A DNA stretch of 64,000 nt, from positions 61,669,835 through 61,733,834 of the forward strand of contig NC_057726.1 of assembly GCF_004010195.1 (NCBI RefSeq), read 5' to 3'. Shown here piece by piece: positions 28,196-53,688 of the stretch. Origin of the DNA: Chiloscyllium plagiosum (lineage: Eukaryota). The translations under genes were made by a program, and so were the position numbers. The notes beneath the pieces are model-generated. The model ran no database searches, was not told the origin of the DNA, and saw only the letters and a list, made by a program, of their open reading frames with translations. Each line of letters begins with the position of its first letter. Positions within the stretch are counted from its first letter, which is position 1.

Positions 28196-28196
<1 letters not shown>

Positions 28197-28252
<56 letters not shown>
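28197..28252. repeat. (GA)n microsatellite
   Basis: Seen directly in the sequence. Confidence 0.95.
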
Positions 28253-28254
<2 letters not shown>

Positions 28255-28522
28255 ATGGCAGTAGGAGATTGATTCGTCAGATCTACAGTCAGGCAATTCT
28301 GCTACTATGGACGTGATTCTGAAATGATGTGTTGCCATCCTGGGGGCAGAGCCATGATTGTCACTTGTACTACAATAGCAGTCACATAATTACGGAGCAA
28401 TTTGCTGGTATGTTTAATGGGTGTTTGCACTAATTTGGTCGATAAATGGGATTTGGAGGTAGAGTGAGAGGATGTCCAGGCAAATATAGAACAATAATTA
28501 AATATAATCAAGTAAGGCACAT

Positions 28523-29169
28523 TGTTATGGACGAGGTCAAAGCACTCAAAACATTCTTAAGCAGGCAGCCCTAGACATAACTTTGCAATTTGTTTCGGTA
28601 AATGTAAAGTGAAAATTACCCGGAGTAAATAAGGTAGGTTGACCACTAGATTTTAAAACAGCCAAAAAAATTAATTTCAAAATTGCGCAATGAAACACAA
28701 AGAACAGAATAAAAATCCCCTAAATAACTAACCTATCCAGCTAGACTTAATTATGCTGTTCCGAATACAGACAGCAGTCCCAATAAGCAAACTCCCTTTT
28801 CAAACCCAGTATACATGCTTACAGATTGAAGTTAAAGGGCAGAAAACAGAGAGAGTTTCCACACAGCTCCCTGTGAACTTCCCTACTCAAGACTGACTAA
28901 AACTGCTCAGCTCAGGTCAGCTCAGCTAACTAAAGAGCTGTCAAGTCCTATCTCTTTATACAGGTCACTTATAAAGCATGACTACTTTGGCCTGTAGTCT
29001 CATCTGTTTACATATCAACAAAAGACCTGCTAAAACCCTTTTCATCTCTGTACCAAACCAGACTGATCGGAGTCTGGCCCAGTTTATTGCCCCTCTGAAA
29101 AAAATCTAGGACAGAGTTTCCTTGAGCTAAGGAGCAGCTTTTTGAAGAAAAGGGACGGGCTTTGTGACA
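28523..29169 (-). mobile_element. Solo LTR of the same gypsy family
   Basis: Aligns with 2495-3123 and 7114-7732, has TGTTAT...GTGACA ends and a perfect 4-bp TSD (ACAT). Confidence 0.9.
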
Positions 29170-31766: not shown

Positions 31767-31853
31767 GGGAGAAAATGAGGTCTGCAGATGCTGGAGATCA
31801 GAGCTGAAAATGTATTGCTGGAAAAGCGCTTTTCCAGCAACACATTTTCAGCA
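31767..31853. mobile_element. Short hairpin insertion with a 15-bp TSD
   Basis: GTGAACCTAAACATG is duplicated on both sides; internal palindrome gctggaaaagcgcttttccagc. Confidence 0.8.
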
Positions 31854-33044
31854 GTGAACCTAAACATGCTTATTTTAATTATGTTAACTTAATCCTTATT
31901 ATAAGGCATCGTGCTAACCCTGTCTTTAAAACTAAAGCACGTGGTGTCATTGATGGCATACACAACAGGGTAAGTGTTAGGGGTCTTGGTATCCTCAAGG
32001 CATAAGTTGGACGGGGTCAATATTCATTCACAGAGGGCCAACCTCCTCTTTCAACTATTTTTCATCATTATATTGATAAAGGTTTGTGCAATCATAGCAT
32101 GATAGGATGTGGCATATGATTACTTTCCAACATAATATTTGGCAAATGCATTGTCACTGAAAGCAACGAATGATCATGAATCTGTATTTGCAAGAGCTTC
32201 TTACCATTGTGGTCTCTCCCATGCTACATGTGGGTAGACTAAATAGTTGAGATTACTTTTCATGTTGTCTTGACAACACCATTATGATGCAACCTTAAGG
32301 GCATTGCGAGGTGGACGAGGTGGACTTTAAGTTTTTTTTGCCAAGAAACCACCAAAGCTGCAGACAGAATGGAAGAATTTCACGTAGTAGTCAAACAGTG
32401 TGTAATTGGTTTCCCATATGTAGAAAATGCCACATTGTGTGCAGCAATTCAGAATAGCAATTGATAGAAATACAGATAAATCGCTATTTCACTAGCAGTC
32501 AGTCATACGTTTGCATCTCATACTAATGAAGAATATCAACACGTCTTTTGAATGGTTACAGATAGAAATGAAAAAAATACCATTTGATCTGGACATGAGC
32601 TATTGAGTTGAACTGACTTATGAAAATCATGGATCCCCAAGATAATAACCACAAAGACTTCTCGTTTTTATTTTATCCATTCTATTAGTGTAGGATATGG
32701 TTCACTAGATTTTGCAGAATGCTGGAAAAGAGTTGAATTCCTTCTTAACAAGAGATATGAGAAAGAATTATTTTTGCTTTATGAATGGGGTATAGGTAGT
32801 TTTATACCTATAGAACTCAGTATTCGTTATCCATCACAAGTCACCATTGCAGATTGTAATGGGCTGACTCTTGAATGTTTCAGTAACTCCCCCGTCCTCG
32901 TTCAGAGGAAGTTCAAGGATTTTGATCCAGGAACAAGTGAAAGATCTGTAATGCAGGATGGCGTGCAGCTGGTTTGAGTGGACATGAAGATGGTCTGAGA
33001 GTTACAGATCAGTAGGACACAATGAAACAGCGATAAGTATGAAT

Positions 33045-33050
33045 TTTATT
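33045..33050 (-). terminator. Probable polyadenylation signal of gene A
   Basis: AATAAA on the minus strand about 70 nt after the inferred ancestral stop at 33118. Confidence 0.5.
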
Positions 33051-33214
33051 GTATGTGATTGGATATCCTTGACTTCCATCCATAAATAATTCACAACTTC
33101 AGCATCCTTTTCTGGGTTCAGCTTCTCTCTTTCCTTGACAGCTTTAAATCTGTATATATCGCGGATTCTTCTTGGTATATAAGTTTTGATTTTTTATTTT
33201 GGAACTGGTAAACT

Positions 33215-33259
33215 TCAAGTTGCGTAAGCCAGCTTGTCATCTCCACTGCTTTGATAAGT
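33215..33259 (-). CDS. Gene A exon 6: terminal cytoplasmic exon TYQSSGDDKLAYAT* (truncated ITIM)
   Basis: Acceptor ttacttccatag|. The exon and its upstream intron align with the paralogous exon at 7852-7970. An out-of-frame continuation encodes SAIYTDLKLSRKERS* (stop 33118-33120). Confidence 0.72.
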   Translation of the reverse strand, partial: TYQSSGDDKLAYAT

Positions 33260-33529
33260 CTATGGAAGTAATGTTTAATTTCACCTGTTAGTCCATTGTC
33301 ACTTCCTGCTTAAGATAATCGAGGTTGGAAATAGAAGTTGTTATGAAATTTCTGCTCATTAGTTCTCAATTTGACAATATTTCCTAAAGTAATAATCTCT
33401 CCCAACTAGAAAGACTAGAGCAATGGATGGCTTGTGATGTCACCATTTCTGTACTAATATGAAATTGTACCACTCTCCTTTCATTGTTGCTGGTCAAAGT
33501 AATCAAGCCCCTTTCTCAATGGTATTATC

Positions 33530-33846
33530 TTAGAATCCCTATTGTGTAGGAACAAGGCCACACCAATTCTCCAAAGAGCATCCCATCCAGACTCACCCCA
33601 CTACCCCATCCCCATAACCCTGCATTGCCCATGGGTAATCCAGCTAATTTACGAATCCCTGGACACTATGGGCAACTTAGCATGGCCAATCCACCTAAAT
33701 TACAAATGTGAGAGGAAACGGGAGCACCATACAGACATGGGGAAATGAGCATGTTCCACGCTCTCAGTTGCCCAAGGCTTGGTTTGAACCCGGATCCCTG
33801 ACACAGTCAGGCAGCACTGCTAACTCATGAGCCACTGTGCCGCCCC
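33530..33846 (-). mobile_element. tRNA-derived SINE, older copy
   Basis: GGGCGGCACAGTGGCTCA head, GGTTCAAACC B box and a body shared with the 5310-5627 copy. Confidence 0.75.
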
Positions 33847-34519
33847 ACATGCACCAAGTCCACATGTACTGCAGTTGTTCAATAAGGCAACTCACCATCG
33901 CCTTCTGAAGATCAATCAGGATGAGCAAGAAGTGTTGGCCTTGTCAGTGATACCCACATGCCATGGGAAATAACTTTAAATTGGCACAATTTACAGATAC
34001 TAAAGGCAACATATATTCGATCAAATCTAAAGGCATTTCTTGAGGTAACTCACATTCAGTCCCAATTCCTAATTTAAACACTGTTGTCCTGCAGATTTAT
34101 TTTCAAGTGCCCATCCAATTTCGTTTTAAAATCATTGATGGTGTCTGCTTTCACTGCCCTAATGAGTTATATGTTCCAGGCCAATATCACTCACGTTAAA
34201 CAGTGCTTCCTTGCATTTCCTTTGTATTTCTGAGACCAAACCTTAAATCTGTGTTCCCTAGACTTTGCGTTTATTAATGGGAAACATTTCTCCTTGTCTA
34301 TCCTCTTTAAACCCACCATAATGTTGTATGCCTGTATTATGTCATACCCTCAATATGCTTTTGTCAAGGTCAACGCTCCCAGCATTCCAAGTATCATAGA
34401 TTTACCATTTCCAAGCTGAAGAACAATCCTCTTATATTTCACGTGAAGTCACTCAAGAGCCCACTTTTCCTAAATTTTGACGACCACAACTGCGTTTAGT
34501 ATTCAATTTGCTATCTAAG

Positions 34520-34727
34520 TCTAGATTAGAGTGGTGCTGGAAATGCACAGCAGTTCAGTCAGCATCCAAGGAGCAGTAAAATCGACGTTTCGGGCAAAAG
34601 CCCGAAATTGTGCCCAAAAAAATTGATTTTACTGCTCCTCGGATGCTGCCTGAACTGCTGTGCTTTTCCAGCACCACTCTAATCGAGACTCTGGTTTCCA
34701 GTGTCTGCAATAATTGTTTTTACCAAG
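34520..34727. mobile_element. Penelope-derived hairpin element (second family)
   Basis: Inverted arms gattagagtggtgctggaaa and tttccagcaccactctaatc, flanked by TATCTAAG repeats. Confidence 0.75.
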
Positions 34728-37700
34728 TTGTTATCTAAGCAAATCTATAAAGCTTCAACATTACTTCCTTACTTTAGTACACAGTGCCACCATTTATGAA
34801 TTTCGAGAAAACATATGGTGTGACAACTATACTTTTATTTTTTTGCCACATTAAATATTGATGAAGGAGCACCTTCAGCTCTCCTCCGTCTTGTACTCTC
34901 TTCAGAAAGTTATCAATCAGACTATGCTGTTTCTCCTTACCCATACTAGAAAATTCATTATCTTCACTTTGCTAAATTACACATGACTAACTAGTCCATA
35001 TCCTGTTACAATCCATTTTTCTATCATCGTGTGTTTGCTGCTGCTACTTTGGCTTCATCAGCAAATTTTGAAATTTGATTCTGTGATCCAATATTTACGT
35101 CTTTAAATAAAACAACAAAAATATGTTATTGACTGATTTATTTCACTGGTTTGGTTCCTGTCAGTGTTTCGATCTTCTACCTCTTTATATTGTGTTGTTG
35201 TTCTGGTTAAATCTTGATGTTAAAGGTATTTGTTTGTTATTGTAACCGATTAAAAGAAGCAGGCTAATGCTTAAATGAAAATAGCAAGCAGAAAAATGTC
35301 ATATAGCCGTTTAATTTCTTTACTTACCTGCAGCTAGTCTGTTCTGCTTACAGAATCGGTCATTCTCGGTAGAATATGTCTTTGTTGAGATTTTAAATGT
35401 GTTGCACTGCTTTTCATAATCTTTCCTTTTGAGATAACTTCCCAGTTCAACTTATCCAACCCTGTCTTTGCAATTTTGCAAGTGTCTTTTGGTTAAGTTT
35501 CAGACACAGATTTTAGATAGAAGATTCTCATTTTCAAACCAAATGTGAAAATTCTTTATGGTATGATCACTTTCTGTGGTGGTTCGTTTATTGCAACATC
35601 ATCAAACAACTTTTCTCATTCAATATTACGTGTACTAATTTAATCTGTTCCACAAAGTATTGTTCTTAGAAACTGTCATGAATACATCCCATGAACTGCT
35701 TCTGAAATCAAATAACCCCTCGTACTTTGCAATTTCAGACAAGAAAAATTAATTTACTCAGCCTCTCAATGGACACCCACTTCATCTCAGGGACAATTTA
35801 AGGTAGGCTTACCATGCAGTCTCCAATATGAATACACCTTACATTAAACCAAAAGCAAATAAATGTAGAGTCTGGAAACCTGAAACAAAAACAGAAATTG
35901 CTGCAGAAACTCAGCAGATCTGGCAGCATCTGTGGAGAGAAAGCGCAGTTAGCATTTGAGTCCAGTGACCCTTTTTCAGAAATGCTTCACCAGAAATTTC
36001 TGTTTTTCTTTCGTCCTTCTTTAAACTTTTAAAGCAAAGTGCACACAATTTCCAGGAGTTATGTCACCAAAACCTGGCTCAATTGGAGCAAGATTTCTTT
36101 ATTCCTTTTGCTACAAGCCTCTCAGAATAAAAATCACTGTGTCATTAATCTTCCTAATGAGTTACTCTACCTGCATACTGACTTTCTGTGTTGCTTGTGT
36201 AACTATACCCACACGGCTCTGAACATCAGATTTACACCTGCTAAATTAAGGTATCCATTTCAATTAACAGTAAAATCACCAACAACTATTGCAGCACTTT
36301 TTGTCCCATCCATGGTATTTCTTGACTTCTATGAAATTAGCTGCTGATCGGTGGACTATAAACTATGTCCACTTGTAATTTCTTCTCCTTGTTATTTCTT
36401 ATCTCATTCTCACAATTATTGCATATTTATATTCTCATCAAAAGTAATGTCGCATGATTGCAGTGATCAGTAATCTTTTAACAGAACCAATACATCTCCT
36501 GTCGCTTTGATTCTAATCCTATTGTAATGTCGCACACTCTTTAACATTCGATATCCAGTCTTGGTTACCTTGTAAATATGTCTCTGCATTGACTATCAAA
36601 TTATAGCCGTTTTCTTGCATTCATGTGATCAATTCATCAAGCCCGTTACAAACTCTGTCTACATTCAACTGAGGAGCCTTCAATCTGACTGTATGTTTTC
36701 ATCTCACTTTGCATAATCAGAAAATTGAAATATACACGTTCTGTCTTGAATTATTTGCATAGGTTTGAAATACGTCACGTTCTTGCATGCAGTAATATCA
36801 GTCTTCCAACCTTAAAAGATTTGGTTTGAGCACACTGTTTGCTTCGTATCTGTCAAACAATTCTCTATCAATGCTAATGTAATATTCTGAACGCAAGTTC
36901 TTGGCTGTCACGTGACCTTTTGGAATTCCATTTGGAAATGCCGACACACGATAATTTGTGATTTCCCTGTCTTCTTCTTTGCAACAGGAAACCTCCAGAC
37001 GCTTTAAAATATTTGTCAGACATGGTATTTCTTATGTCAAACTGTGCTGACTTATTCTAATCATACAACAAATTTCTAACTGATTTGTTTATACTTTAAT
37101 AATATATTCTGGAATTTTGATAAGAAACGAGGCTGATCTAAATGCCCTGCAATACCCTGTTTCCATTTTATTTTTCCTTGAATGTGAGATTGCACTCTTC
37201 ATTTCCCAATCTGATGTGAATGGTTTTGGAAATAAGGAATTTTGTTTGAAAATAGCTAGGATAGATTTCTTCATTGCTTGTGAAAATTTCTGCATCAGCA
37301 TTACCAATATTTACTTTAGCAAGTTCTTTTCTTTTTGTATACTTAATAACGCTCTTACGACCTATTTTTATATTTTTAGCTATTTTACTTTTATTTGTTT
37401 CCATTTTATCAACTTTTCGATGCTTCCCTCTTACTTATTGAGTCACCCCCACTTCTCAGTCGAGTTTCCATTCTTCGCAAAATACAAACCTCTTCAAAAA
37501 TTTTAAACCATATTTGTCTACCTGAGTGAGCCGTGGATAATATTTCTTGCTGAGTTTTTATTATTCCATTAACTGAATTTTATTTTTTTTAATTGTGATT
37601 TTGAATTATACCTACTATGCATAATATCAGCTTAATATTATTTAAATTATATAATCATCTATTTCCACCTCATTGTAACGTATTGATTTGGATGAAGTTT

Positions 37701-39774
37701 GTAATTCTTGTCCGTGGCTACAATTATGAATCCTACCATGGAATTCAATGGAATTTATTGACACTATTTCCCAGCAGACATTACAATGTTAGTGCTACTT
37801 AATGATTCCTCGTGAGACAACATTAAATCTATAATAACTTCATTCAGAGGCAGTTGTGTAAGTATTTCTGCCTGAAACTATCACAAAAATAAATTCTAGA
37901 AACTACTGTTCCAGATCATTCTGAGCAATTCAATTGACGCTGCTTATGTAAAGATTAAATTCACCCATGATAAATGCATTTCCTTTATGACAAGCTCAAA
38001 AGTGTTAGCTCAATGCTTGGTCCACAGTACACTTTCTCTTATGGGCCCGACAAACTGCTCCTGCTATCAATCGCTGACTCCTGATATTTCCATTTACCGT
38101 GGACAGTGAGTCTGTTTCGTGATTTTCTTACTTATTTTGTTACATTATCCTTTATGATTAGAGACACCCTCCTCTTTTACGACTCCGAACTCCTTTTAAA
38201 ATGTGTGTACCCTGGCATGTTTATTTCTCAATCTTCCTCACTTTGTAGTAATGTCTCAGTTGTAGTGCTCAAATCAATTCCATTTACAATACCTATATTT
38301 GTGTAAATAACATGCATATTTTCTTGAAGATGCATCATGCATTTAGAAGAAAAGAATCTTTAATTTCACTGTTTTACTTCTCATTCTTACATTGACTTTA
38401 TTCACAGATGAAGCACTAATTCTAAACCCATAGTCCCATAGAGCTTTTTTTTCTGCCTACACCACTGTATTGTTCTAATGTCTCAATATCTTATTCTATC
38501 TCTCTGGATTGCTAAAATCTTGCTTCACCGTATTCCTGTCACGTGTATACCTGATTATAGCTATCGTTACACCTTTATCCGGGGCACTAGTCCCACTAGT
38601 GTAAGTAGTGCCCACGGAAATTAAATTGTTTTGTGTTTGCCAAATAATCAACACCCTCCCTTGTTGCAACAGTATCATTTGAGCCATGTGTTGAAGTCTC
38701 TCGTCTGCTGTATCCTATGCCAACAGGCGTCTGGCTTAGGTGACAATTTCAGAGATTATAACTTGATACCTGTTCCATTTTTAATTGAGGCATTTACTTC
38801 TAAAACTCTTACAGCATAACATCATTCCTTGTTACACATGTGTCATTGGTTCCCATGGCAACTAGATTCTCCCCTCTCACTCCAGGTTCCTTCTCAGTCA
38901 TGAGGTGATGTCCTCAACCTTAGAACCAGGCAGATAGCATAGCATTTGGAACTCGAAGGGTCAACTGTTAATGGGGATAATTATTTCCCAGTTTGTTCTG
39001 TACAAGTATTTCAATTTAGCAACTTGGCACTTGCAAATATCTTATTTTTCAATGAATTTTAATTATGATGGTTCAGAATCAGAAGTTTCTCCTGTTTAGT
39101 TTATCTGACCGAAGGCGGGTCCAAGTTAATTACCAAAGCACAGCAAAATGCTGTGATTATTTATGAATCTATGGGCAAGGCAAAGAAGTTAATGTTGAGT
39201 TTACCCTATTCTAAATCCGTACACATGAAAAATGTAACAGCCAGAAAGAGTGCAGTGGTCATTTAGAATGGTGTCTGGGATGAAGACCTTCAGTCACTCT
39301 GGGTAGATTAGACAACTTTTGATTGTTTTCCACAGGGCAGTCACAGACAAGGGAAGATTTCTTAAAGTTGCTCACAATTATGAGACGTTTCAATAAAGTA
39401 AGTCAAATATGTTTCCAGTTGTGGGTCTGTCAGTACCCAGACGATACATTTATGATTGCTAATAGCATAAGCCTGGGAAGATGACGATTTATAGAGACTT
39501 CTACTCTAGTCTGAAATGCACTTCCTGAATATCTGATAGAAGCAGAGTCAATGGAAGATTTAAAAATGAAGTAGAGATTTCCTCATAAATACAGAAACAC
39601 AAGTTCAAGGACAAAATGTGAGGAACTGGGCTGATTGAATATTTGTTTTTAACGACTTAAAGAGCCGTAATAGCCCCCTTCAGTCTGTAAATGAATCAAC
39701 CTTCCCAGATTATTGCAATACATCTTGTTATTCCTTCTTAACTGGTTTTCTCTGAAGAAAGATTGTCACCCTAC

Positions 39775-39818
39775 CGGCTGTTGAGCTTCATCCTCTACCA
39801 CAGCATGTCTCCTAACAC
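39775..39818 (-). CDS. Gene A exon 5: short cytoplasmic exon GVRRHAVVEDEAQQP
   Basis: Strong polypyrimidine acceptor tcttttctttcctttag| and donor CCG|GTAGGG. Its 44 bp (phase 1 to 0) bridge the TM exon and the phase-0 last exon. Confidence 0.65.
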
Positions 39819-40349
39819 CTAAAGGAAAGAAAAGATCCCTAAGTTTAATTCAAATTACGAAAAAAAACCACAAATGTAACCACAAATATATACATATGTT
39901 GCCACTTATTCAGATGAGATTCACTCGATTGACACCTGGATTGAGTGGGTTGTCTTATGTGGATCAGTTGGATGGACAAGGCTTCTTTCCATTGGGGTTT
40001 GGAAGAAAGAGGCGTAACTTTATTGCATGTATCAAAGCGTGAAACATTTTGACAAGGTGAATGTAGGGAGCATGTTATCATATGAGTGAATCCTGAACCA
40101 TGGTATACAGTTTACGAATTAAAGGTTGTCCTTTGTGGACAGAAATATGGAGTCTTTTCTGTTGTCTTAGAAGATTGTACCAGTTTGGAACTCTCTGCTC
40201 CTGAATATGGTGGTGGTCACATGACTGAATATTTAAAGGCAAATTTACTGAGATTCTTGTTTGACAAGAGGAATGAAATTTTACTTGTGGATAGTTGGGA
40301 ATGTGGAATTACAAGCACTAACTGCTTTACCATAACTTTATTGAATGAT

Positions 40350-43300
40350 GGAACATAGAACATAGAACATAGAACAATACAGCACAGAACAGGTCCTTCG
40401 GCCCACGATGTTGTGCCGAACATTTGTCCTAGCTTAAGCACCTATCCATGTACCTATCCAATTGCTGCTTAAAAGTCACCAATGATTCAGATTCTGCCAC
40501 TCCCACAGCCAGCGCATTCCATGCCCCCACCACTCTCTGGGTAAAGAACCTACCCCTGACATCCCCCCTATACCTTCCACCCTTCACCTTAAATTTATGT
40601 CCCCTTGTAACACTCTGTTGTACCCAGGGAAAAAGTCTCTGCCTGTCTACTCTATCTATTCCCCTGATCATCTTATCAACCTCTATCAAGTCACTCCTCA
40701 TCCTTCGCCGTTCCAATGAGAAAAGGCCTAGCACTCTCAACCTATCCTCGTACGACCTATTCTCCATTCCAGGCAACATCCTGGTAAACCTCCTCTGCAT
40801 CCTCTCCAAAGCTTCCACATCTTTCCTAAAGTGAGGCGACCAGAACTGCACACAGTACTCCAAATGTGTCCTTACCCCAAGGTCCTGTATAGCTGCAACA
40901 TCACCTCACGACTCTTGAATTCAATCCCACTGCTAATGAACGCTAATACACCATAGGTCTTCTTACAAGCTCTATCCACCTGAGTGGCAACTTTCAAAGA
41001 GCTATGAACATAGACCCCAAGATCCCTCTGCTCCTCCCCCTTAGTAAGAACCCGACTGTTAATCCTGTATTCCGCATTTTTATTTGTCCTTCCAAAATGG
41101 AAAACCTCACACTTGACAGGGTTGAACTCCATCTGCTACTCCTCAGCCCAGCTCTGCATCATATCTAAGTCCCTTTGCAGCTGACAACAGCCCTCCTCAC
41201 TATCCACAACTCCACCAATCTTCGTATCGTCTGCAAATTTACTGACCCACACTTCGACTTCCTCTTCCAAGTCATTAATAAAAATTACAAACAGCAGAGG
41301 ACCCAGAACTGATCCCTGCGGAACTCCACCTGTAACTGGGCTCCAGGCTGAATATTTACCATTTACCACCAGTCTCTGACTTCGACTGGTTAGCCAGTTC
41401 TCTATCCAACTGGCCACATTTCCCACTATCCCATGCCTCCTGATTTTCTGCACAAGCCTACCATGGGGAAACTTAACAAATGCCTTACTAAAGTCCATGT
41501 ACACTACATCCACTGCTCTACCGTCATCCACATGCTTGGTCACCTCCTCAAAGAATTCAATAAGACTTGTAAGGCAAGACCTACCCCTCAAAAATCCATG
41601 CTGGCTGTCCCTAATCAAGCAGTGTCTTTCCAGATACTCATAAATCCTATCCCTCAGTACCCTTTCCACTACTTTGCCTACCACTGAAGTAAGACGAACT
41701 GGCCTGTAATTCCCGGGGTTATCCCTATTCCCTTTTTTGAACATGGGCACAGCATTCGCCACTCTCCAGTCCCCTGGCACCATCCCCGTTGACAGTGAAG
41801 ACGAAAAGATCGTTGCCAACGGCTCTGCAATTTCCTCTCTTGCTTTCCACATAATCCTAGGATATATCCCTTCAGGCCCGGGAGACTTGTCTATCCTCAA
41901 GTTTTTCAAAATGACCAACACATCTTCCTTCCTAACAAGTATCTCCTCTAGCTTACCAGTCCGTTTCATACTCTCCTCTTCAACAATACGGTCCCTCTCA
42001 TTTGTAAATACTGAAGAAAAGTACTCATTCAAGACCTCTCCTATCTCTTCCGACTCAATACACAGTCTCCCACTACTGTCCTTGATCGGACCTACCGTCG
42101 TTCTTGTCATTCTCATGTTTCTCACATAGGCATAAAAGGCCTGGAGGTTATCCTTGATCCTACCCGCCAAAGATTTTTCATGCCCTCTCTTAGCTCTCTT
42201 AATCCCTTTCTTCAGCTCCCTCCTGGATATCCTGTATCCCTCCAACGCTCTGTCTTCCTTCCCTGACAGCCTGTGCTCCCAACTTATGCTCCTCAGATCC
42301 TGTCTTACAGCATCGTATTTACCCTTCCCCCAATTGTAAAACCTACCCTGTTGCACGCACCAATCTCTCTCCATATCCAAGGTGAAGTCACAGAATTGTG
42401 GTCACCATTACCAAAATGCTCACCCACTAACAAGTCCATCACTGGTCCCGGTTCGTTACCAAGTACCAAATCCAATATGGCCTCCCCTCTGGTCGGACAA
42501 TCTACATACTGAGTTAGAAAAGCTTCCTGGACACATTGCACAACCACCGCCCCGTCCAATCTACTTGAACTAAAGAGCTTCCAATCAATATTTGGGAAGT
42601 TGAAATCGCCCATGACTACTACTACCCTGTGGCTTCTGCACCTTTGCAAAATCTGTTTCCCAATCTGTTTCTCCACATCTCTGCTGCTATTGGGGGGCCT
42701 ATAGTAAACACCCAACAAGGTGACTGCTCCTTTCCTATTTCTGACTTCAGCCCATACTACCTCCAAAGGCAGATCCTCCTCGAACTGCCTTTCTGCAGCC
42801 ATTATACCATTTCTACTTAGCAACGCCTCACCCCCTCCTTTTTAACCACCCTCCCTAATCTTACTGAAACATCTGTAACCAGGAATCTCCAACAACTATT
42901 CCTGTCCCTCTTCTATCCACGTTTCAGTGATGGCCACAACATCGTAGTCTCATCCACGCTTAAGTTCACCCACCTTATTTCTGATACTCCTTGCATTGAA
43001 GTATACACACTTGAACCCATCTCTGTGTCCGCAAGTATTCCCTGTCAGTGATACCTTCTCCACAGTCTCCCTACATTCTTGGACATCCTGAGAAACAGCT
43101 TGCCTACTTGCTGGACTACAAGTCCGGATCCCATCCCCCTGCCAAATTAGTTTAACCCCCCCGAAGAGTGCTAGCAAACCTACCTCCCAGGATATTGGTG
43201 CCCTTCTGGTTCAGGTGCAACCCGTCCGGCTTGTACAGGTCCCACCTTCCCCAGAATGCAGTCCAATTGTCCAAATACCTGAAGCCCTCCCTGCCACGTG

Positions 43301-43930
43301 TTCAACTGCACTCTCTCCTTATTCCTTGCCTCACTGTCACGTGTCACCGGCCACAACCCAGAGATGACGACTATGTCCGTCCGAGCTTTTAGCTTCCAGC
43401 CTAACTCCCTGAGCTCCTGAATGACCTCCCCACCCCTCTTCCTACCTATGTCGTTGTTGCCAATGTGCACCACGACTTCTGGCTGCACACCCTCCCCCTT
43501 AAGGATTCTGAAGACATGGTCAGAGACGTCTCGGACCTTCGCACCCGGGAGGCAACAAACCAACCGAGAGCCTCGCCCATGTCCACAGAACCGCCTGTCC
43601 GTCCCTCTAACTATAGAGTCTGCTATAACTAGCGCTCTCCTACTCTCCCCCTTTCCCTTCTGAGACTCAGAGCCGGACCTCGTGCCAGAGACCCGGTCAC
43701 TGCAGCTTACCTCTGCTACGCCGTCCCCCCCAACAGTATCCAAAGCGGTATACTTATTGTTGAGGGGAACGACCACAGGGGATCTTTGCACTGCCTGCTT
43801 CCTCCCCTTCCCACCTCTATCTGTTACCCAGCTACCTCTGTTCTCTGGCGTAACTATGTCCCTGTAGCTTCTATCTATCATCCTCTCAGCCTCTCGAATA
43901 ATTCTCAGTTCATCCAACTCCAGCTCCCTG
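40350..43930 (-). mobile_element. Relatively young CR1 LINE in intron 4 of gene A (ORF1 SGNH-esterase-like; ORF2 EN-RT with an internal deletion)
   Basis: ORFs 43180..43917, 42305..42823, 41136..42380 ([15 protein letters not shown]) and 40429..40863; (TATGTTC)n tail. Confidence 0.95.
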
Positions 43931-44507
43931 GAGTTGACGGGAGAGACGGGAAAGATTGAATGTTCTATTGTCCTTTTAATTCATATACTTGCTTGTGTGA
44001 GTAATTTACTAAGTGCTCAAGCTACACCAGTAGCCTGCATTACCAAGTGTTACACCTCAGTTAGGAGTATATTATTTTCACAAATCCGGTCTTGGTACTA
44101 CTCACAACAGAGCAGACCTTTCCTCTTCTCGGATTTTAATTTGACAATCTAGTTCACATTGCGAAATTACTTCAAATTTAGCACCTGGAAGTAAAGTAAA
44201 ACAGTTTGGATACTCCGATATCACTTCAAAATGAATACAATTACACTTCTGACTTTAGAATAGGAAGGTTACGTATAAATCGAGTGGACAGTTCGAATGA
44301 GGGGATGAAATAAATCCACTCTATATTGTCATGTCGTATGGCTAATCACATAACTATTTGTGATATCCGCTTCATCCTTCAAAGGTGTAGGAAAGTGTTC
44401 ACATTTCCTCTGCAGTTAATCACGACACACCTGCACTTTGCGACTTAAAACGAGGATGACTGGGCCTTGGAAATTAAAAATATTCAGTGAAATAACGAAC
44501 GTCTTAC

Positions 44508-44636
44508 CAGCTGATGCCTTTAACTCGAGTCTTGTCAAAATTATTATCAATAGTAAAATTGCCAGCGAGCCAACTGCCCATCTAGAGATCAGCAGATAAT
44601 CTTTCCCTACAGGATCAATAACATTTGAATAAGAAA
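44508..44636 (-). CDS. Gene A exon 4: stalk and transmembrane segment with Arg
   Basis: Acceptor tgctttgcag|, donor G|GTAAGA, 129 bp, phase 1-1, open frame VSYSNVIDPVGKDYLLISRWAVGSLAILLLIIILTRLELKASA. Confidence 0.82.
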
Positions 44637-45744
44637 CTGCAAAGCATCACAAGATTTAGACAATGAGAATCGAGGTTAGGCAGAAGACGAACTGCAAAGG
44701 ACTGTCCCAGAGGATCCCGTCCATACATGTGAATCGGGGCTGATCCCTTTTATTTCAACCGTGTGATATGTGTTCAAGGATTATACTGTGGATCACATGA
44801 AAAATCAGTAATACAATTTATGGAGGGAACAGTTCCACAGAGATTTGGCAATCTTCAATTTGGGTTGTTTCTTAAGAAGAAAACACATTTTATGAAACTC
44901 GTCAATTTATATCAGCACCTGCTGCAAAACTGTCAAATTCTTAACTTCATCAGATTTAATGCAGATTACCTCCTGTAACATTTGGCAATTAATACGTGCA
45001 TCTTGCAATTATGTAACTCCTTTAACATGACCAGGTGTCCAACGCATTCCAGAGGTCCGTTATCAATACAATCCAGCCACTTACAGCAGATTAGAACAAA
45101 TGGATCAGAAACATAAATTTCTGGAGAAAGTCAACTGGTCTGGCAGCATCTCGTGGCGAGCGAAACCGAGTTAACTTTTCGAGTCCAGTGATTTTTTTTT
45201 TTCAAACAGATAGCAGCGAGGAACAAAGTGGTATATATACTGAAGACAGAGTTTGGTACTGTGGGGAGTTTGGGTAGGGAAACGAGTGAGTGGATCGGCA
45301 GAGATGGAACCAAAAGAATGGAACAACATGTGCACAGACAAAGGGATATATGACAACATGCCAGGAAGAAAAGAATGCTGGCAATGTGGAATATAACTAG
45401 ATGCTAACGAGTTGACTGTCCTGAAAGCTGTTCATGTCCTTAGTAGGACTTCGAGTGTGGGAGTAGGCAAAGGCCATAGAAGAAGGTGTTCAGGCCCGAA
45501 AATTGTTGAATTCGACATCATGAGTCCTGAAGGGTACAAGGTCCCCAAGCAGCAAATGAGATTCGGTTCTTCTAGCTTGCTGGAAAGCTGCAGCAAGTCC
45601 GAGACAGAAATGTTGGCCAGGGAACATGGTACTGTCTTGTATTGACAGGCAACTGAAAGCTAGATGTCATTTTTGAGGACAGAATGAAGATTATTTGCGA
45701 AGGAATTGCCTAGTCTGTGTTTTCTGTCCCCAGTGCAGAAGATA

Positions 45745-46974
45745 CAGCATTGCCTCTACACCACTGAAGCCAGATGCCAACTCGAGGACACCACTTCCTA
45801 CCGCCCCCTCGACCATGACCTTACCCCATCACCAAACCACCATTTCCCAGACCATACAGAACCTCATTACCTCAGGAGATCTCCCACCCAGAGCTTCCAA
45901 CCTCATAGTCTGGGAACACCACACTGCCCGGTTCTACCTCCTTCCCAAGATCCACAAGCCTGGCCACCCTGGCTGACCCATTGTCTCAGCATGCTCCTGC
46001 CCCACTGAACTCATTTCTACCTACCTCAACACTGTCATATACCCCCAGTCCAGGAACTCCCCACATACGTTCGAGACACCACCCACGCCCTCCACCTCCT
46101 CCAAGACTTCCGTTTCCCCGGCCCCCAATGCCTCATCTTCACCATGGATATCCAGTTCCTCTACACCTCCATCTGCAATTACAAGGGCCTCCAAGCCCTC
46201 CGTTTCTTTCTCTCCCGAAGGCCCCAACAGTACCCTTCCACTGACACTCTCATTCGTTTGGCTGAACTTGTCCTCACCCTTAACAATTTCTCCTTTGAAT
46301 CCTCCCACTTCCTCCAGACCAAAGGGGTAGCCATGGGCACCCGTATGTGACCCAGCTATGCCTGTCTCTTTATTGGCTACGTAGAACAGTCCATCTTCCA
46401 TAATTACACCGCCACCACTCCCCACCTCTTCCTCTGCTACATTGATGACTGCATTGGCGCAACCTCGTTTTCCCGTGAGGAGGTTGAGCAATTCATCAAC
46501 TTCACCAACACATTCCACCTCGACCTTAAATTTACCTGGACCATCACTGACACCTCCCTCCCCTTCCTGGACCTCTCCATCTCCATTAATGACGACCGAC
46601 TTGACACTGACACTTTTTACAAACCCACCGACTCCCATAGCTACCTGGATTACACCTCGTCCCATCCTACCTCCTGCAAAAATGCCATCCCATATTCCCA
46701 ATTCCTCCGCCTCCGCCGTATCTGCTCCCAAGAGGACTAATTCCACCATAGAATACACCAGATGGCCTCCTTCTTTAGAGACCGCAATTTCCCTTCCCAT
46801 GTGGTTAAAGATGCCCTCCAACCTATCTCATCCACATCCCGCACCACCGCCCTCAGACCCCACCCCTTTAACCGCAACAAGGAAAGAACACCCCTGGTGC
46901 TCACCTTCCACCCTTCGCATAAACCAAATCATCCGTTGACATTTTTGCCACCTCCAAACAGACCCCACCACCAG
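45745..46974 (+). mobile_element. Penelope-like element RT fragment, with an inverted fragment at about 45390-45740
   Basis: FYLLPKIHKP, TMDIQFLYTSI, QTKGVAMGT, YIDD and LPFLDL motifs typical of PLE RT. Confidence 0.88.
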
Positions 46975-47483
46975 GGGTTATCTGGGAATGATTATCTGGG
47001 GAGGGATTAGACAGCCACGGCTGACAAAGGAAGTCAGGAAATGTATTAAAGAAAAAGAGAGATCATATAAAGTGGCCAAGAGCACTGGGAAATCAAAAGG
47101 TTGGGAAGTCTACAAAAACAAACAAAGGATAACAAAGAGAGAAATGAGGAAGGAGAGGATTAAATATGAAGGTAGGCTAGCCAGTAATATTAGAAATGAT
47201 AGTAAAAGTTTCTTTCAATACATAAGAAACAACGACAGGCAAAAGTAGATATTGGGCCACTTCAAACTGATGCTGGAAGCCTAGTGATGGGAGATAAGGA
47301 AATAGCAGGAGAACTTAATAAGTACTTTGCGTCAGTCTTCACAGTGGAAGACATGAGTAATATCCCAACAATTAAAGGGAGTCGGGGGCTGAGTTAAGTA
47401 TGGTTGCCATTACAAAAGAGAAAGTGCTAGTGGGCGACATCCTAAAGTTCTGAGGGAGGTGGCTGAGGAAATAGCGGAGGCGT
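46975..47483 (+). mobile_element. CR1 ORF2 fragment running into the gap
   Basis: SKSFFQYI and ELNKYFASVFT motifs. Confidence 0.8.
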
Positions 47484-48160
47484 NNNNNNNNNNNNNNNNN
47501 NNNNNNNNNNNNNNNNNNNNNNNNNNNNNNNNNNNNNNNNNNNNNNNNNNNNNNNNNNNNNNNNNNNNNNNNNNNNNNNNNNNNNNNNNNNNNNNNNNNN
47601 NNNNNNNNNNNNNNNNNNNNNNNNNNNNNNNNNNNNNNNNNNNNNNNNNNNNNNNNNNNNNNNNNNNNNNNNNNNNNNNNNNNNNNNNNNNNNNNNNNNN
47701 NNNNNNNNNNNNNNNNNNNNNNNNNNNNNNNNNNNNNNNNNNNNNNNNNNNNNNNNNNNNNNNNNNNNNNNNNNNNNNNNNNNNNNNNNNNNNNNNNNNN
47801 NNNNNNNNNNNNNNNNNNNNNNNNNNNNNNNNNNNNNNNNNNNNNNNNNNNNNNNNNNNNNNNNNNNNNNNNNNNNNNNNNNNNNNNNNNNNNNNNNNNN
47901 NNNNNNNNNNNNNNNNNNNNNNNNNNNNNNNNNNNNNNNNNNNNNNNNNNNNNNNNNNNNNNNNNNNNNNNNNNNNNNNNNNNNNNNNNNNNNNNNNNNN
48001 NNNNNNNNNNNNNNNNNNNNNNNNNNNNNNNNNNNNNNNNNNNNNNNNNNNNNNNNNNNNNNNNNNNNNNNNNNNNNNNNNNNNNNNNNNNNNNNNNNNN
48101 NNNNNNNNNNNNNNNNNNNNNNNNNNNNNNNNNNNNNNNNNNNNNNNNNNNNNNNNNNNN
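47484..48160. other. Assembly gap (677 N) in intron 3 of gene A
   Basis: Run of N. Confidence 1.
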
Positions 48161-48834
48161 TACTTCCAATGCTAAATAAATCGTTTTTCGCATTTTGTCT
48201 CTTTAATGTACGTACAGTGGATATTTCGTTCCATTCTGGATGCCATATAAATAAAAAGATTGACGCAAGAAATGAATAACTGAATCAGAAATCTATTGTC
48301 TACGATGTTAAGTGACGATTTGCTGAAACTGGAACCTGATTTACAAGCAATGTTTGCCAGTTCATCATATGGTTCTACGTAAAACATAACAATGATAACA
48401 GGATGAAACGACTTGAGGTGGTGAAGAATAAATCAATTGACTTTCTCCCCTTCAGTATCTCAGGGTCACACTGATTTGTTTTCGTTCCTCAGAGACCAGA
48501 GTCTCTTCTAAGATCACTGGATCGCCAGTGTGTTTGACAGCTGGAACATTGACCAGTGAATTCAGAATGCACAGGCGTAGACCTTTTAAAATAAATGTAA
48601 ACCTGTTGGGACATATGTACAGGAAGGGAAAGCAATGACCTTTATGCTGTGGAACTGGAAATTGTGTTAATGATGTGCATAGCTTCCTATTGAAAATATA
48701 AAGCGCCAATTGTGCACAAGCCAGGATGAAGATAAGCCCCATAATTCGTGCTCCCATTCTTTGCACTGCAGTGCCACCATTGTGTAAAGGGCTGTTAGCC
48801 CCATCTCACCTCTGGAATTCTGCCCTTTTCTCCA

Positions 48835-49310
48835 TGATTGCAATGGTAGGTCTAACATACGAGGAACGGCTGAGGATCCTGGGATTGTATTCATTGGAGT
48901 TTAGAAGATTAAGGGGAGATCTAATAGAAACTTACAAGATAATACATGGCTTGGAAAGGGTGGACGCTAGGAAATTGTTTCCGTTAGGTGATGTGACTAG
49001 GACCCGTGGACACAGCCTTAGAATTAGTGGGGGCAAATTCAGAACAGAAATGCGAAGACATTTCTTCAGCCAGAGAGTGATGGGCCTGTGAAATTCATTG
49101 CCACAGAGTGCAGTGGAGGCCGGGGCACTGAATGTCTTCAAGGCAGAGATTGATAAATTCTTGATATCACAAGGAATTAAGGGCTACGTGGAGAATGTGA
49201 GTAAGTGGAGTTGAAATGCACATCAGCCATGATTGAATGGCGGAGTGGACTCGATGGGCCGAATGGCCTTACTTCCACTCCTATGTCTTATGGTCTTATG
49301 GTCTTATGGC
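48835..49310 (+). mobile_element. CR1 3' end
   Basis: RRLRGDLIETYKI and TRTRGHSL motifs; (TTATGGTC)n tail. Confidence 0.88.
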
Positions 49311-49940
49311 TCTATAACATCATTTTCCAGCCTTCCCAGGCAACACCTACTGCAAACTTTAGTGCGTACAAAAAGAACAACTTGCAATTTCAATGCACTT
49401 TTAACTGGATTAAAATAATTCAAGATACTTCTCAGCATCATTATCGTGACATTAGGACAGAAAGTAGTAAGACTCAAGAAGCGTCTTAAAGAAGGAAAGA
49501 CACAGCAGGAAGTGGAGAGGTCAGAATTTTCCAAATATTGGAGGTAGGCAACTGAAAACGTTGTTGGCAGAGAGCAGCTGAGCAAGATAAACAATATACA
49601 TGTTCAGGTTGCATAAATCACTTGGGTGGAAAGGATCAATTTTATTTGTACGCTCATTTCATTTAGCAAAAATTAATTGCCGAGTTTTCAACTTTTGATT
49701 AGTTTTCACATGAACCTCCCGTTTCAGATCACTTCAAGGAGTTATTCCTCAACCTGCATCTCCAAGCTATCTTAGAATATTTTGCATTGTTTCCATTTCT
49801 GCGGCATTGAGAATAAACACGGGTCGCATTATAATAATATGCTCAAATTTGAACAGCTGCCCAACGACTTAAAAAGTCGCGTTTATGATCTTATTTCCAT
49901 CACACCTCCAACTCCCTACTGGGAAAATTTTCGATCTTAC

Positions 49941-50237
49941 CTCGATTAAAGGAGTAGCTGACACTGGTGGGCACCTTAAGACAAGCATGAGATACCAGGC
50001 AGGTATAAACTACACTGCTCCATCCAGGTTGTGCATCTTTCAACGAACTAGTAACCTCATAGAGCCCATCCACGGTCTTGCTTCTCACAGTTTCTATTCC
50101 AGCATGAAGCTTGAAACCATCTTTTAACCAGGAGATACCTAGATCCTTCGGGTAAAAGGCTGTCGTTTTGCACTCGAATTTCAAATAATTCCCTGAAATC
50201 TCTTCCACACGATCGATTTTCAGGAGGGTTGGGGGAA
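49941..50237 (-). CDS. Gene A exon 3: Ig C1-set domain
   Basis: Acceptor tttctgttatag|, donor G|GTAAGA, 297 bp, phase 1-1. Contains CKTTAFYPKDLGISWLKDG, YEVTSSL and the Ig/MHC signature YTCLVSH. Confidence 0.93.
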
Positions 50238-52913
50238 CTATAACAGAAAGTAAAACATTTGTAAAAAAAATACACTCTCTTTTGTACTCCCTCTCCACTC
50301 TCCCTCCTTGCCCACCCCACGTTATGCTATTCCATTCCTGCTGTGACAACAGTTTTCCTCGTTATCATATTTTAAACTTGGTCTTTGCATTTATTTTTAA
50401 AAATGCACGGTGAAATGCTGGGATGTTTAGCAAACGATGCTCAAAAAGGATGATTCTGGGTGGAAAATCTTTAATAAAGTGCAGTGCTAACATAATCCCA
50501 GGGTTTTCGCTCTACTATAAATGAATTTCGGTTTTTGGACTTTCTTTTTTCCTGGAGGAGATTCTGCCTGTAGGGAACTTACGAATTAGGATCTGAAGTA
50601 GGTCTATCCAATTAGTAGGTCATTCGACCCTTTGAGCCTGATCTAACAGTCAATAAAATCATGCCTGCGATTTTTGTTTTCCTGATTTGTATTCTTGTCT
50701 TGGCCTGAACTCCACCAACCGGCCACTTCCCCCCACGCCCCCCCCAAAAGATCAATTCTACATTAACCGTTTATTAAAATGAATGTATACGTAGCTGGAA
50801 GTAATGTCACTGGGTTTGCATTGTTCTGCTGTTGATTACAATCAATATCCTTAACCTCTGTTCTCTACATGTTTATGGTTCCTGAATTTTAATAACAGGG
50901 AATTATTAAATTAGTTATGTTTTTCTCTTCCAAATTTATGCGAGCTGTTATTGCCAGCAAAGACTGAAAATTCTTCCATTTACCCCACAGATCCGCTTTA
51001 GATATCACAGAGTTCCCGTGGACAGAGGAAATAGTATTATCTTGGTCTCCTGTCATAAGTCCATTTGCATCGAAATATAAATTAAAGCGCAGGAGCGCAG
51101 AAGTTTATACCTACGCTTAGTGCTTTCCTTCCTTCACTTTGCCTGTTGTGCCTACATCAGAGAAAGTCAAGTTGAAGGACTACAGAGGATCAAGCACAGG
51201 CAATGAGTAACTTCACTGTCCTGCAAGCTTTAGGTCTGGGGATAGCATCCAGCATTGAGTGCAAGAACAAAACTTGCCCTACGCCAGATAATGTGATTCA
51301 CTTGTTAAAAGAAAGAGATTGATGTTGAAAACATTTTCGTTTCAAGCATGCACAGCCAAAACGTTTGGTCATTCCACTGTTGACTTTCTTGCATGAATAT
51401 GGCGTGGAAGCAGAACATTCCACCCATCGAGTTCAGATCTCCACAACTTCCTCTGTATTTCACTTAGGTTGTGGTTGAACTGTATCGCAACTCTTTTTTC
51501 TGTTTTTATTCTGTTCCTTTGATCCCCAGGATTAATTCCCCTTGATATCCATCTCAACGTTTGAACAATTCGGCACAGAATAATTCGGTCGGAAATTTGC
51601 AAGTTGAAAAATTATCTAGTTTTTGTCGCATATACATGTTATCATTCACTTGAATTTACAATGAATGCAAATTGTCGGTGCCAATTAGTAAGTCTTTATA
51701 ATCTTGTATAAGAAATTGATATAGGAGGAGTTAGAATTGTTCGGATGGAAGATTATAATCTGAAACGCTTTTGATCAATAAGAAAATCCAAGGGTATCGG
51801 GGGTGGACAGGAAAGTGCAGTTGAGACCACTAACACACTATCCACAATTTTATTGAGTGGCTGAGTAAACTCGACGGACAATGGTCTACTCTTGCTTCTA
51901 ATTCTTCTGCTCGTATTATATCTGTAGATGCTCAGATACATTAGAAGTGATTTCTGTTAGAATTTCACATTTCAGTGACCCTAGCACTTCATTTTTGTGT
52001 TAAGGTTGTTTCCATTGTCGAAATTTAGCACCATTATTTTGAGGTAAACCGAGCATCTTACACCATGGCATAAAAATCAGATATTGCTGGAGAAACTCAG
52101 CAGGACTGGCAGCTTAAGAATATAACAAATAGGAGTAGACGTAGGCCATCTCACCCGTCGAGCCTCCTCCGCCATTCAATAAGATCATGGCTGATCTTTT
52201 CTTGGACTCAGCTCCATTTGCCCAGCCGCTCACCATAGCCCTTAATTTCTTTGCTGTTCAAAAATCTATTATTGCATGAAAAAAAAATTTAATGCGGCAA
52301 CCTCAACTGGTTTACTGGGCAGGGAATTCCACAAGTTCACAACCATTTGCGTGAAGAGTTTCCTCCTCAACTCAGTCCTAAATCTGTATCCCCTTATTTT
52401 GAAGCTATCTGCTAAGCGAAAAGAGAGTTAACCATTCCAGTCAAGTGACCTTAAAAACCGTACTGAAAAAGGATCGCTGAACTCTAAACGTTGGCTCACA
52501 CAGATGCTGTCAGACGTGTTGAACTTCTCTCGAAATTTCTATTTTAGTTTCTGATTTTCAACATCCACTGTTCTCTATTTTATCATATTTCATGAATTAA
52601 TTTCACTCCACAATTTAAACAGTTATCCTGTTCCACTATCTTGGCGCAATATATTGTTTCTGCACGAAAATGTCACTCACTACATTAACAGCACTGTGCA
52701 ATGTCATGATCACAATGAGCAGTGGAATGTATCTTGAGAAATGGCACAAAACGGGCGAAAGCGAATCAATGGCCGTCATACAGCGAGGTCAACGGAGAAG
52801 AAATTCCCACAGTTGTGTGAAGCCAATAAGCTGTCACTGGAGTTTCCTCAAATTATAAAAGTTCAGATCATGTAAGTCACACAAAACAGCTAAAGGGTTG
52901 TCTGCCCCGGCAC

Positions 52914-53092
52914 AATGTTGAAGAGTGTGGTGCCGGAAAAGCACAGACGGTTAGGCAGCATCCGAGGAGTAGTAGAGTCGATTTTTCTGGCGTAAGCCCT
53001 TCATTCTGTTCCTCGCATGCTGCCTGGCCGACTGTGCTTTTCCAGCATCACACTCTTCGACTCTGATCTCCAGCATCTGCAGTCCTCACTTT
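52914..53092. mobile_element. Penelope-derived hairpin element about 20 bp from the V-exon donor
   Basis: Inverted arms gaagagtgtggtgccggaaaagcacag and ctgtgcttttccagcatcacactcttc. Confidence 0.7.
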
Positions 53093-53114
53093 CGCCTGGT
53101 ACAATGTAACTTAC

Positions 53115-53423
53115 CGCACACTGTCAGCAACGAGCCACTTTCAGCTCCAATGATGCTTTGCTGATGACTTATTTTACAATGATACATTCCAGAGTCTGCA
53201 AAAGTGACATTGAGGACATGAAGCAAGCCTCTTCCTTTCTGGACGTGAAATCGCTTTCTGTTGTCCGGTTCCAGAAACAATTCCTCATTGTGTCTCCACC
53301 AAAATACTTCAGGAACATCTTCAAATATGGGAAATGTGCAGAACATGGAAACATTGTCACCTCTGGCCGCCTTTAAGACTTTGGGAAACTGGTGTACTTT
53401 GCTCGAAGTCATTTTAGTGACTA
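53115..53423 (-). CDS. Gene A exon 2: Ig V-type (VJ) domain
   Basis: Acceptor ttttttttttcag|, donor G|GTAAGT, 309 bp, phase 1-1. It has the B-strand Cys (SMFC), C-strand Trp (VFWW), DSGMYHC, a J-like GAESGSLLTV end, and sequons NVS and NVT. Overlaps ORF 53086..53508. Confidence 0.93.
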
Positions 53424-53633
53424 CTGAAAAAAAAACACGTAAAACCATGATGCTAGTTGGGAGACAGCTGACATGGAAAAACAATGGAGGAGTAAAATGC
53501 ACAAACAATTAAGAACAATCACGCGCATCCAATTGGAGAAGCAGAGCATCTAACTTTGAGATGCAAAGTTTTTCTGAGTGTGAAATACAATCTAAATTAT
53601 TCTAACAGGGTAGCGAGTAACATTTAAGAGTAC

Positions 53634-53688
53634 CTGGCCAAGCTATACCCAGAAGAGTCATGAACAGAATTGCTGCTCTCACCGACAT
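53634..53688 (-). CDS. Gene A exon 1: signal peptide MSVRAAILFMTLLGIAWP
   Basis: ATG at 53688 in an AAAATGT context, hydrophobic core, phase-1 donor CCAG|GTACTC, and a 210-bp intron to the V exon. This is a typical IgSF leader exon. Confidence 0.85.

Follow-up and report, generated by a model that had tools for sequence, protein, structure and literature searches.

A non-rearranging V-C1 membrane receptor gene of the shark Chiloscyllium plagiosum and its relation to a chondrichthyan family with SIRP-like tails

Immunoglobulin (Ig) domains of the C1 set and joined V-J domains mark the antigen-receptor lineage, and it is this that gives interest to a gene combining the two. Such a gene had been proposed in a preliminary description of a 64,000-nucleotide (nt) stretch of the Chiloscyllium plagiosum genome (assembly GCF_004010195.1, contig NC_057726.1, positions 61,669,835 to 61,733,834; hereafter the window, whose first letter is position 1), within a span of 20.6 kilobases (kb) from 33045 to 53688. 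The locus raises the question of whether these widely spaced exons form a genuine gene and, if they do, to what family it belongs and what kind of receptor it would encode. We conclude that these exons make up a genuine gene, one that does not rearrange and that encodes a type I membrane protein composed of a signal peptide, a short V domain, one C1 domain, a transmembrane (TM) segment and a short tail, and that this protein is probably an activating-type member of a receptor family of cartilaginous fishes.

Sequence reading and location of the exon borders delimited six exons on the minus strand, separated exclusively by GT-AG introns with phases 1, 1, 1, 1 and 0 (Table 1). The donors are, in order, CAG|GTACTC, GCG|GTAAGT, GAG|GTAAGA, CTG|GTAAGA and CCG|GTAGGG, and the split codons read GTA, GTT, GTT (GGG with the shorter TM exon) and GGT, encoding Val, Val, Val (or Gly) and Gly with no stop among them. 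Every exon is open in its own frame and the exon lengths add up to 879 nt, that is, 292 amino acids (aa) plus the stop codon, exactly the frame that had been proposed. A second in-frame acceptor in exon 4, at 44606, gives a shorter form of this exon (44606-44508, 99 nt) and a protein of 282 aa in total. The total length is thus the sum of the exon lengths, and the gene model was searched exon by exon.

According to the available text of PMC2785349, C1-set domains are distinguished by a BC loop that begins with (F/Y)(F/Y/H)P, by exactly 13 residues from the B-strand Cys to the C-strand Trp, and by an F-strand Cys followed by xVxH. All three occur in exon 3, as FYP, as a Cys-Trp interval of 13 residues and as C-L-V-S-H from the F-strand Cys onwards, and the matches of this exon in PDB are Ig constant domains and UrIg2 (E = 4.1e-17 for UrIg2). 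The V exon fits the Pfam V-set only slightly better (E = 4.3e-10) than the I-set (8.8e-8), and it encodes two N-glycosylation sequons. Its two Cys residues are 54 residues apart, at the lower end of the range of 54-60 found in relatives, and SIRP alpha d1, when aligned to the family profile, shows 11 inserted residues after strand C', so that the shark domain is probably a short V domain without a C'' strand. It is short and lacks the 11-residue stretch of SIRP d1, and for this reason does not count as a typical antigen-receptor V. When the V exon was compared with PDB as a single sequence, most matches were multi-domain I-set proteins (DCC, titin, contactins) with scores summed over domains, a result that was uninformative for family assignment.

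The V exon runs through the G strand to a donor GT, and no heptamer-spacer-nonamer arrangement of a recombination signal sequence (RSS) was found at its end; a scan of 1.3 kb gave two loose matches against 0.8 expected in shuffled sequences, both located elsewhere. The proposal of a V domain and its G strand in a single germline exon without RSS, followed by one C1-set domain, a TM segment and a short tail, is confirmed. The G strand itself is present in the V exon as described, its J-like motif being degenerate with Glu in place of the first Gly of GxG. Directly after the G strand, at the hinge between V and C1 (53115-53120, …LLTVC|V…), there is an unpaired Cys that might form an interchain disulfide; this column holds Cys in 6, Phe in 8, Tyr in 7 and His in 6 of 34 relatives.

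With the V exon as query, an exhaustive HMMER search retrieved 939 proteins at E <= 0.001, and among the best 150 of these, which are dominated by giant multi-Ig proteins, 21 short V-C1 proteins were retrieved that are 34-62% identical to the query in V, the short, high-identity rows being chosen by eye. When the V exon alone was used in a length-windowed homologue search, P0008 was the sole match. The relatives assembled in this way are V-C1-TM-tail proteins from 14 chondrichthyan species, including sharks, rays and a chimaera: Heterodontus francisci, Scyliorhinus canicula, S. torazame, Heptranchias perlo, Mustelus asterias, Chiloscyllium punctatum, Pristis pectinata, Mobula birostris, M. hypostoma, Narcine bancroftii, Hypanus sabinus, Hemitrygon akajei, Leucoraja erinacea and Callorhinchus milii. 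All 31 matches of a search with the Heterodontus protein P0151 were chondrichthyan, as were 43 of the 44 matches of a family-profile search at E <= 1e-8, the 44th (P0008) being an unnamed ENA open reading frame (ORF); this cut-off is too strict to reveal weaker matches to SIRP, PRARP or Ig chains.

The exons of the window are collinear with P0151, leader, V, C1, TM and last exon following one another in the same order. By tblastn the leader is 58% identical to residues 1-19 of P0151 (E = 0.004), V is 60% identical (E = 1.5e-38) and C1 is 58% identical (E = 8.8e-33), and both the TM exon and the last exon align ungapped. The V tree joins the window gene with P0008 and with P0166 and P0167 of Scyliorhinus (support 95/96), and in the C1 tree the window exon lies within a set of 13 shark and ray rows (support 95/83). 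By homology and exon order, then, the window gene is a member of a multigene chondrichthyan V-C1-TM family. The Callorhinchus protein P0178 (489 aa, an NCBI model) consists of V-C1, V, a partial C1 and a tail, and looks like a fusion of two tandem genes rather than a true multi-domain member.

An alignment of 27 of these proteins shows a near-invariant G strand, GxG(S/T)xLxV, followed by VPPTPLKI and then C1. The long tails of relatives contain four recurring tyrosine sites, xAYATLNL, TVYAQTK, LTYAALQL and SAVYAEV, among which LTYAAL is a canonical immunoreceptor tyrosine-based inhibitory motif (ITIM). Where the tail comprises at least 69 aa, 23 of 24 members have one to four YxxL/V/I sites (P0188 has only an acidic-flanked one), and no Arg or Lys lies inside the TM core, these residues being confined to its flanks; the helix was placed by script in 38 of 43 relatives, and the printed helices were judged by eye. 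A different combination is seen in P0166 (Scyliorhinus), P0190 (Pristis) and P0191 (Mobula), which have an Arg at or adjacent to the position of the Arg in the window gene together with tails of 12-64 aa that lack YxxL/V/I. The family thus shows, as far as tails and TM helices can be read from sequence, the pattern of paired inhibitory and activating receptors known from SIRP alpha/beta. In the accessible parts of PMC12975943 and PMC2785349, inhibitory SIRP members are described as having an ITIM tail, and activating members a basic TM residue and a short tail. Short tails also occur in P0167, P0020, P0168 and P0098, there together with a second TM type in which Arg lies at the outer end and Asp-His at the inner end (…RLVLGFLVILGLLGIIVDHV…); P0177 has this type too.

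The window copy belongs with the short-tailed members in that it combines a TM Arg with a tail lacking a canonical ITIM. Its TM exon matches that of Heterodontus without gaps (LLISRWAVG against LLIFGCAGG), with SRWAVG in place of FGCAGG, so that Gly has given way to Arg in the outer third of a helix of 22 residues. The last exon, read from its conserved phase-0 acceptor at 33259, encodes TYQSSGDDKLAYAT and then a stop (TGA, 33217-33215). This segment aligns ungapped to TKQRSGENQLTYA... in ten relatives, seven of the ten alignments beginning at the first residue of the exon. The remainder of the ancestral exon (…NKKSK…SAIYTDLKLSRKERS, stop at 33120-33118) fits the C-terminus of the relatives in the +1 frame only, and therefore a frameshift inside the former ITIM truncates the tail.

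Taken together, these features make it fairly probable, in our judgement, that the window gene is an activating-type member of the family, with a ligand-binding V domain on a C1 stalk and a TM Arg coupling to an ITAM (immunoreceptor tyrosine-based activation motif) adaptor, and that it was derived from an inhibitory ancestor by truncation of the tail. By analogy with SIRP alpha, long-tailed members would recruit SH2 phosphatases and inhibit the cell. Members with a basic TM residue and a short tail have the form usual for activating partners, and would signal by way of DAP12, FcR gamma or another ITAM adaptor. The window copy would be of the second kind, its outer helix having changed from Gly to Arg and its ancestral ITIM exon having been frameshifted, so that translation would end inside the former ITIM. 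The cell type, the ligand, the coupling to an adaptor and whether this copy still works are points that we infer.

Several features of this copy, of its transcripts and of its 3' end weigh against the activating-type interpretation. The first Gly of the J-like GxG, which is Gly in 33 of 34 relatives and Ser in the other, is Glu here; the Pro of PPTPL, kept in 31 of 31 relatives, is Leu; and the frameshift in the last exon counts as a sign of decay. The end branches of the window gene are long (0.37 against a tree median of 0.29 for V, and 0.53 against 0.23 for C1), which may reflect only the absence of close species from the sampling. These observations are what would be expected of a young pseudogene, or of a gene that has begun to decay: originally an inhibitory receptor, it would have been deprived of its ITIM tail by the frameshift, its ectodomain would be accumulating damage and its TM Arg would not be under selection. 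Also in line with this alternative are the middle tail exons, which were not found between cyt1 (exon 5) and the last exon when the tails of six relatives were searched against 25000-39775 with tblastn (only the last exon being recovered at E < 0.04), the very low RNA depth, and a neighbouring fragment of a paralogue, at 7887-7982, that has lost both tail tyrosines. We nevertheless consider such a pseudogene, the main alternative to our interpretation, unlikely, while granting it real weight, since the frames of the five ectodomain and TM exons are open, the splice sites are canonical, and all invariant Cys, Trp, Asp, Tyr and His residues are retained. All but one of the 11 invariant columns in the alignment of 27 proteins are kept by the window gene. 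Moreover, the outer-TM Arg and the tyrosine-free tail recur together in Scyliorhinus, Pristis and Mobula, which points to a maintained subtype, and one RNA contig ends exactly at the V donor.

This contig comes from a comparison of contigs and reads from four runs with the leader-V-C1 stretch, none of the runs being on record both as RNA and as holding the V exon. Run X1, whose RNA label is a guess, yielded a single contig of 179 nt with a depth of 3.2, lying on 53115-53287 without mismatch; the match stops precisely at the V donor and the six further letters do not fit the intron. The contig resembles a spliced transcript, but it is single and thin. The C1 exon had zero depth in all four runs, no exon-exon joint of the leader-V-C1 stretch was crossed by any read or contig, and the single-cell runs X8 and X9 gave nothing on exons. 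RNA support is accordingly weak, consisting of this one contig of depth 3.2 from a run whose RNA label is a guess, and of the check by RNA across the predicted junctions, as it had been proposed, only the arrest at the V donor came out in favour of the gene model, with no joint read across. Most aligned records were copies of repeats at 52.0-52.5 kb and 52.9-53.1 kb. The short interspersed repeats at 52900-53100 and 52050-52250, a short way downstream of the V exon, draw thousands of contigs and reads from every run.

The 3' end of the gene is likewise uncertain, as four self-consistent ends exist, giving proteins of 270, 282/292, 296 or 316 aa. If exon 5 is read through its donor, an in-frame TGA at 39765-39763 ends the protein with ...QQPVG, and the Scyliorhinus protein P0166 (271 aa), which groups with the window gene in the V tree, ends with ...EEPVG, matching what the window gene encodes in this case. 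A second exon 5 donor 5 nt further on, spliced to the acceptor at 33259, gives 316 aa; this phase-2 donor/acceptor pair was set aside as last intron because the conserved acceptor of the relatives, 33259, is in phase 0. The phase-0 acceptor at 33204, which gives 296 aa, was rejected on the same evidence, the relatives showing 33259 as the conserved acceptor.

A further tail-type exon lies on the same strand at 26250-26460, 6.7 kb past the polyadenylation signal of the gene. It begins like the last exon of the family (T-K-x), is preceded by a tandem TTTAG|CAG| acceptor near 26457 and has an intact ITIM (…TKHDSQLENNDIHYEVVNEAK…, …DIHYEVV…). It may represent an alternative 3' exon, or else what is left of another copy. 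Were it spliced to exon 5, the tail of the receptor would regain an ITIM, a possibility that also counts against an activating receptor.

Could the gene instead be a true orthologue of tetrapod SIRP (alpha/beta), the chondrichthyan V-C1 form being ancestral and the second C1 domain of tetrapods a later duplication? Many relatives are automatically named 'tyrosine-protein phosphatase non-receptor type substrate 1-like' or 'signal-regulatory protein beta-1-like' by NCBI, and an Atlas feature search with P0151 returned SIRP alpha as the nearest named clusters (score 0.96, 205 of 256 features shared). The family profile aligns SIRP alpha d1-d2 in a single stretch (54.3 bits) and also d3, including the VPPT linker (41.6 bits), and the pairing of inhibitory and activating members resembles that of SIRP alpha/beta as set out in the available portion of PMC12975943. 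Against these points stand one C1 domain instead of two, a V domain in which about 11 residues of SIRP d1 are missing after strand C', and the higher scores that Ig light chains reach with the same profile (66.2 bits for the lambda-type light chain in 2rcj and 60.5 bits for the light chain in 7t62); UrIg2 V-C1 reaches 49.3 bits. No bony-vertebrate protein appeared in the profile search at E <= 1e-8, a threshold that weaker SIRP matches would not pass.

By these scores the ectodomain appears about equidistant from antigen-receptor chains, UrIg2 and SIRP, with no preference for SIRP, which goes against the SIRP link of the interpretation that we favour. We therefore regard direct orthology with SIRP as doubtful, and describe the gene as SIRP-like in plan without filing it as SIRP: the tail and the pairing are alike, but there is one C1 domain, not two. 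The earlier label 'SIRP-like leukocyte receptor' is still the best-fitting option given the tyrosine tails, the NCBI names and the Atlas result, orthology to SIRP not being established. The suggestion that the family may be uncharacterised holds in part, since it is already represented in NCBI gene models from 14 chondrichthyan species, and no paper describing it was found in the full-text literature, subscription papers and supplements (e.g. the gene tables of PMC12227049 and PMC10751288) being outside reach. The automatic NCBI names are inconsistent, ranging from SIRP-alpha-like (PTPNS1-like), SIRP-beta-1-like, NCR3LG1-like, tapasin-related-like, Ig lambda-like and TCR (T-cell receptor) beta-like to uncharacterized.

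Finally, an assembly gap separates the C1 and TM exons, about 1.8 kb past the C1 donor and 2.8 kb ahead of the TM acceptor, and there is a slight chance, also to be set against our interpretation, that it conceals an exon or a misjoin between paralogues; no exon is expected in it because relatives pass directly from C1 to the TM exon without added residues. That V/C1 and TM/tail, on opposite sides of this gap, come from different tandem paralogues, so that no such six-exon gene exists, is suggested by the gap and by the fragment of another family member in the window and is very improbable, given that order, strand and phases all fit the family gene structure, that both halves are nearest to the same relatives (Heterodontus and Scyliorhinus) and that no other family V, C1 or TM exon is present in the 64 kb.

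Table 1. Exons of the V-C1-TM gene and other features of the window
Feature	Position	Length	Strand	Remarks
Exon 1, ATG and most of signal peptide	53634..53688	55 nt	minus	18 codons + 1 nt; donor CAG|GTACTC, phase 1
Exon 2, leader end, V-type Ig domain and G strand (IGAESGSLLTV)	53115..53423	309 nt	minus	Pfam V-set 4.3e-10
Exon 3, C1-set Ig domain	49941..50237	297 nt	minus	Pfam C1-set 2.8e-9
Exon 4, stalk and TM segment LLISRWAVGSLAILLLIIILT	44508..44636	129 nt	minus	Arg in outer third
Exon 5, cyt1	39775..39818	44 nt	minus	Phase 0 donor; annotated feature spans 39763..39818
Exon 6, last exon	33215..33259	42 nt + TGA (33217-33215)	minus	Homologue of the family's ITIM-bearing last exon; full stretch 33118..33259
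AATAAA polyadenylation signal	33045..33050		minus	Last base, 33045, is the start coordinate of the span
Second AATAAA	33193..33198		minus	
Assembly gap (N run)	47484..48160			Inside intron 3; outside any reading frame
Long interspersed nuclear element (LINE) remnant, endonuclease and reverse transcriptase ORFs	40429..43917		minus	Part of intron 4; Pfam RVT_1 1.5e-26, Exo_endo_phos_2 6.2e-8

Much of the 20.6-kb span is repeat-filled intron (Table 1), and the LINE family of intron 4 is found again at 11167-14144 and 23224-24506, the copies being 66-71% identical. A blastn comparison of the gene with the rest of the 64-kb window returned repeats only, and tblastn with the exons detected none of the family's V, C1 or TM exons elsewhere in the window. 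The paralogue fragment at 7887-7982, on the minus strand, is a tail exon of another family member (…LLSQTNEGRGDKNLTNVALQITDSKRASKPKQ…) in which both tyrosines are replaced; it is 50% identical to the TVYAQTK…LTYAALQL region of relatives (E = 1.4e-4) and has no V, C1 or TM partner exon in the window.

A large V-C1-TM family with SIRP-like tails across sharks, rays and a chimaera would move the SIRP-type plan back to the base of the jawed vertebrates, and in this connection the available text of PMC2785349 states that no SIRP genes are known from organisms predating adaptive immunity. The main contribution of the window copy itself would be a worked example of the transition from an inhibitory to an activating (or decaying) receptor. 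As the family is already public, though misleadingly named by automatic annotation, what is gained is its recognition and a proper name rather than an unseen gene. Going further, one might tentatively propose that SIRP takes the form of this family in cartilaginous fishes, that the last common ancestor of chimaeras, rays and sharks already had it, and that it is thus a surviving membrane-bound relative of the pre-RAG antigen-receptor chain beside UrIg/UrIg2, and that the window copy records a change from inhibitory to activating through the ITIM frameshift and the Gly-to-Arg replacement; we consider this whole scenario improbable as it stands.

Compared with known systems, the gene resembles the SIRP family in that an N-terminal V-type domain, its J-like G strand being degenerate in this copy, precedes one C1-set domain, one TM segment and a tail. 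The family also has the two SIRP versions, the alpha type with an ITIM tail and the beta type, in which the tail is short and the TM segment contains a basic residue. It differs in having one C1 exon in the window where SIRP has two, its relatives being likewise V-C1-TM, and in the shorter V domain of the shark family, without the 11-residue stretch of SIRP d1. The basic residue also differs, being an Arg in the outer TM segment here and a mid-membrane Lys in SIRP beta.

Teleost NITR and NKp30/XMIV are germline-joined V receptors that exist in ITIM and charged-TM versions and that are not known to have a C1-set domain. With them (both in the list of PMC11599192) the shark family has in common that they are paired receptor families of the Ig superfamily with VJ-type domains. 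PRARP is a non-rearranging gene of the V(J)-C1 type that is discussed, in the accessible text of PMC10751288 and PMC11599192, as related to the antigen-receptor precursor. It is of the same V-C1 gene type as the window gene. Like the window gene's relatives, PRARP has a TM segment and an ITIM-type tail.

UrIg and UrIg2 of elasmobranchs (PDB 9dmx), as far as the available text of PMC12227049 describes them, are also non-rearranging, with a single-exon V and C1-type domains, and UrIg2 is among the best solved-structure matches both to the C1 exon and to the family profile. According to the same text, UrIg is a liver-secreted protein with three C domains, and UrIg2 has nine or more C domains, whereas the window gene, one of a large multigene family, combines a single C1 domain with a TM segment and a tail of signalling type. 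Finally, Ig light chains and TCR chains resemble the family in joining a V domain with a GxG G strand to C1, and light chains align with the family profile throughout V-J-C, scoring 60-66 bits; unlike those chains, the window gene has no RSS, its V and J are unsplit, its V is short, and its TM segment leads into a signalling tail.

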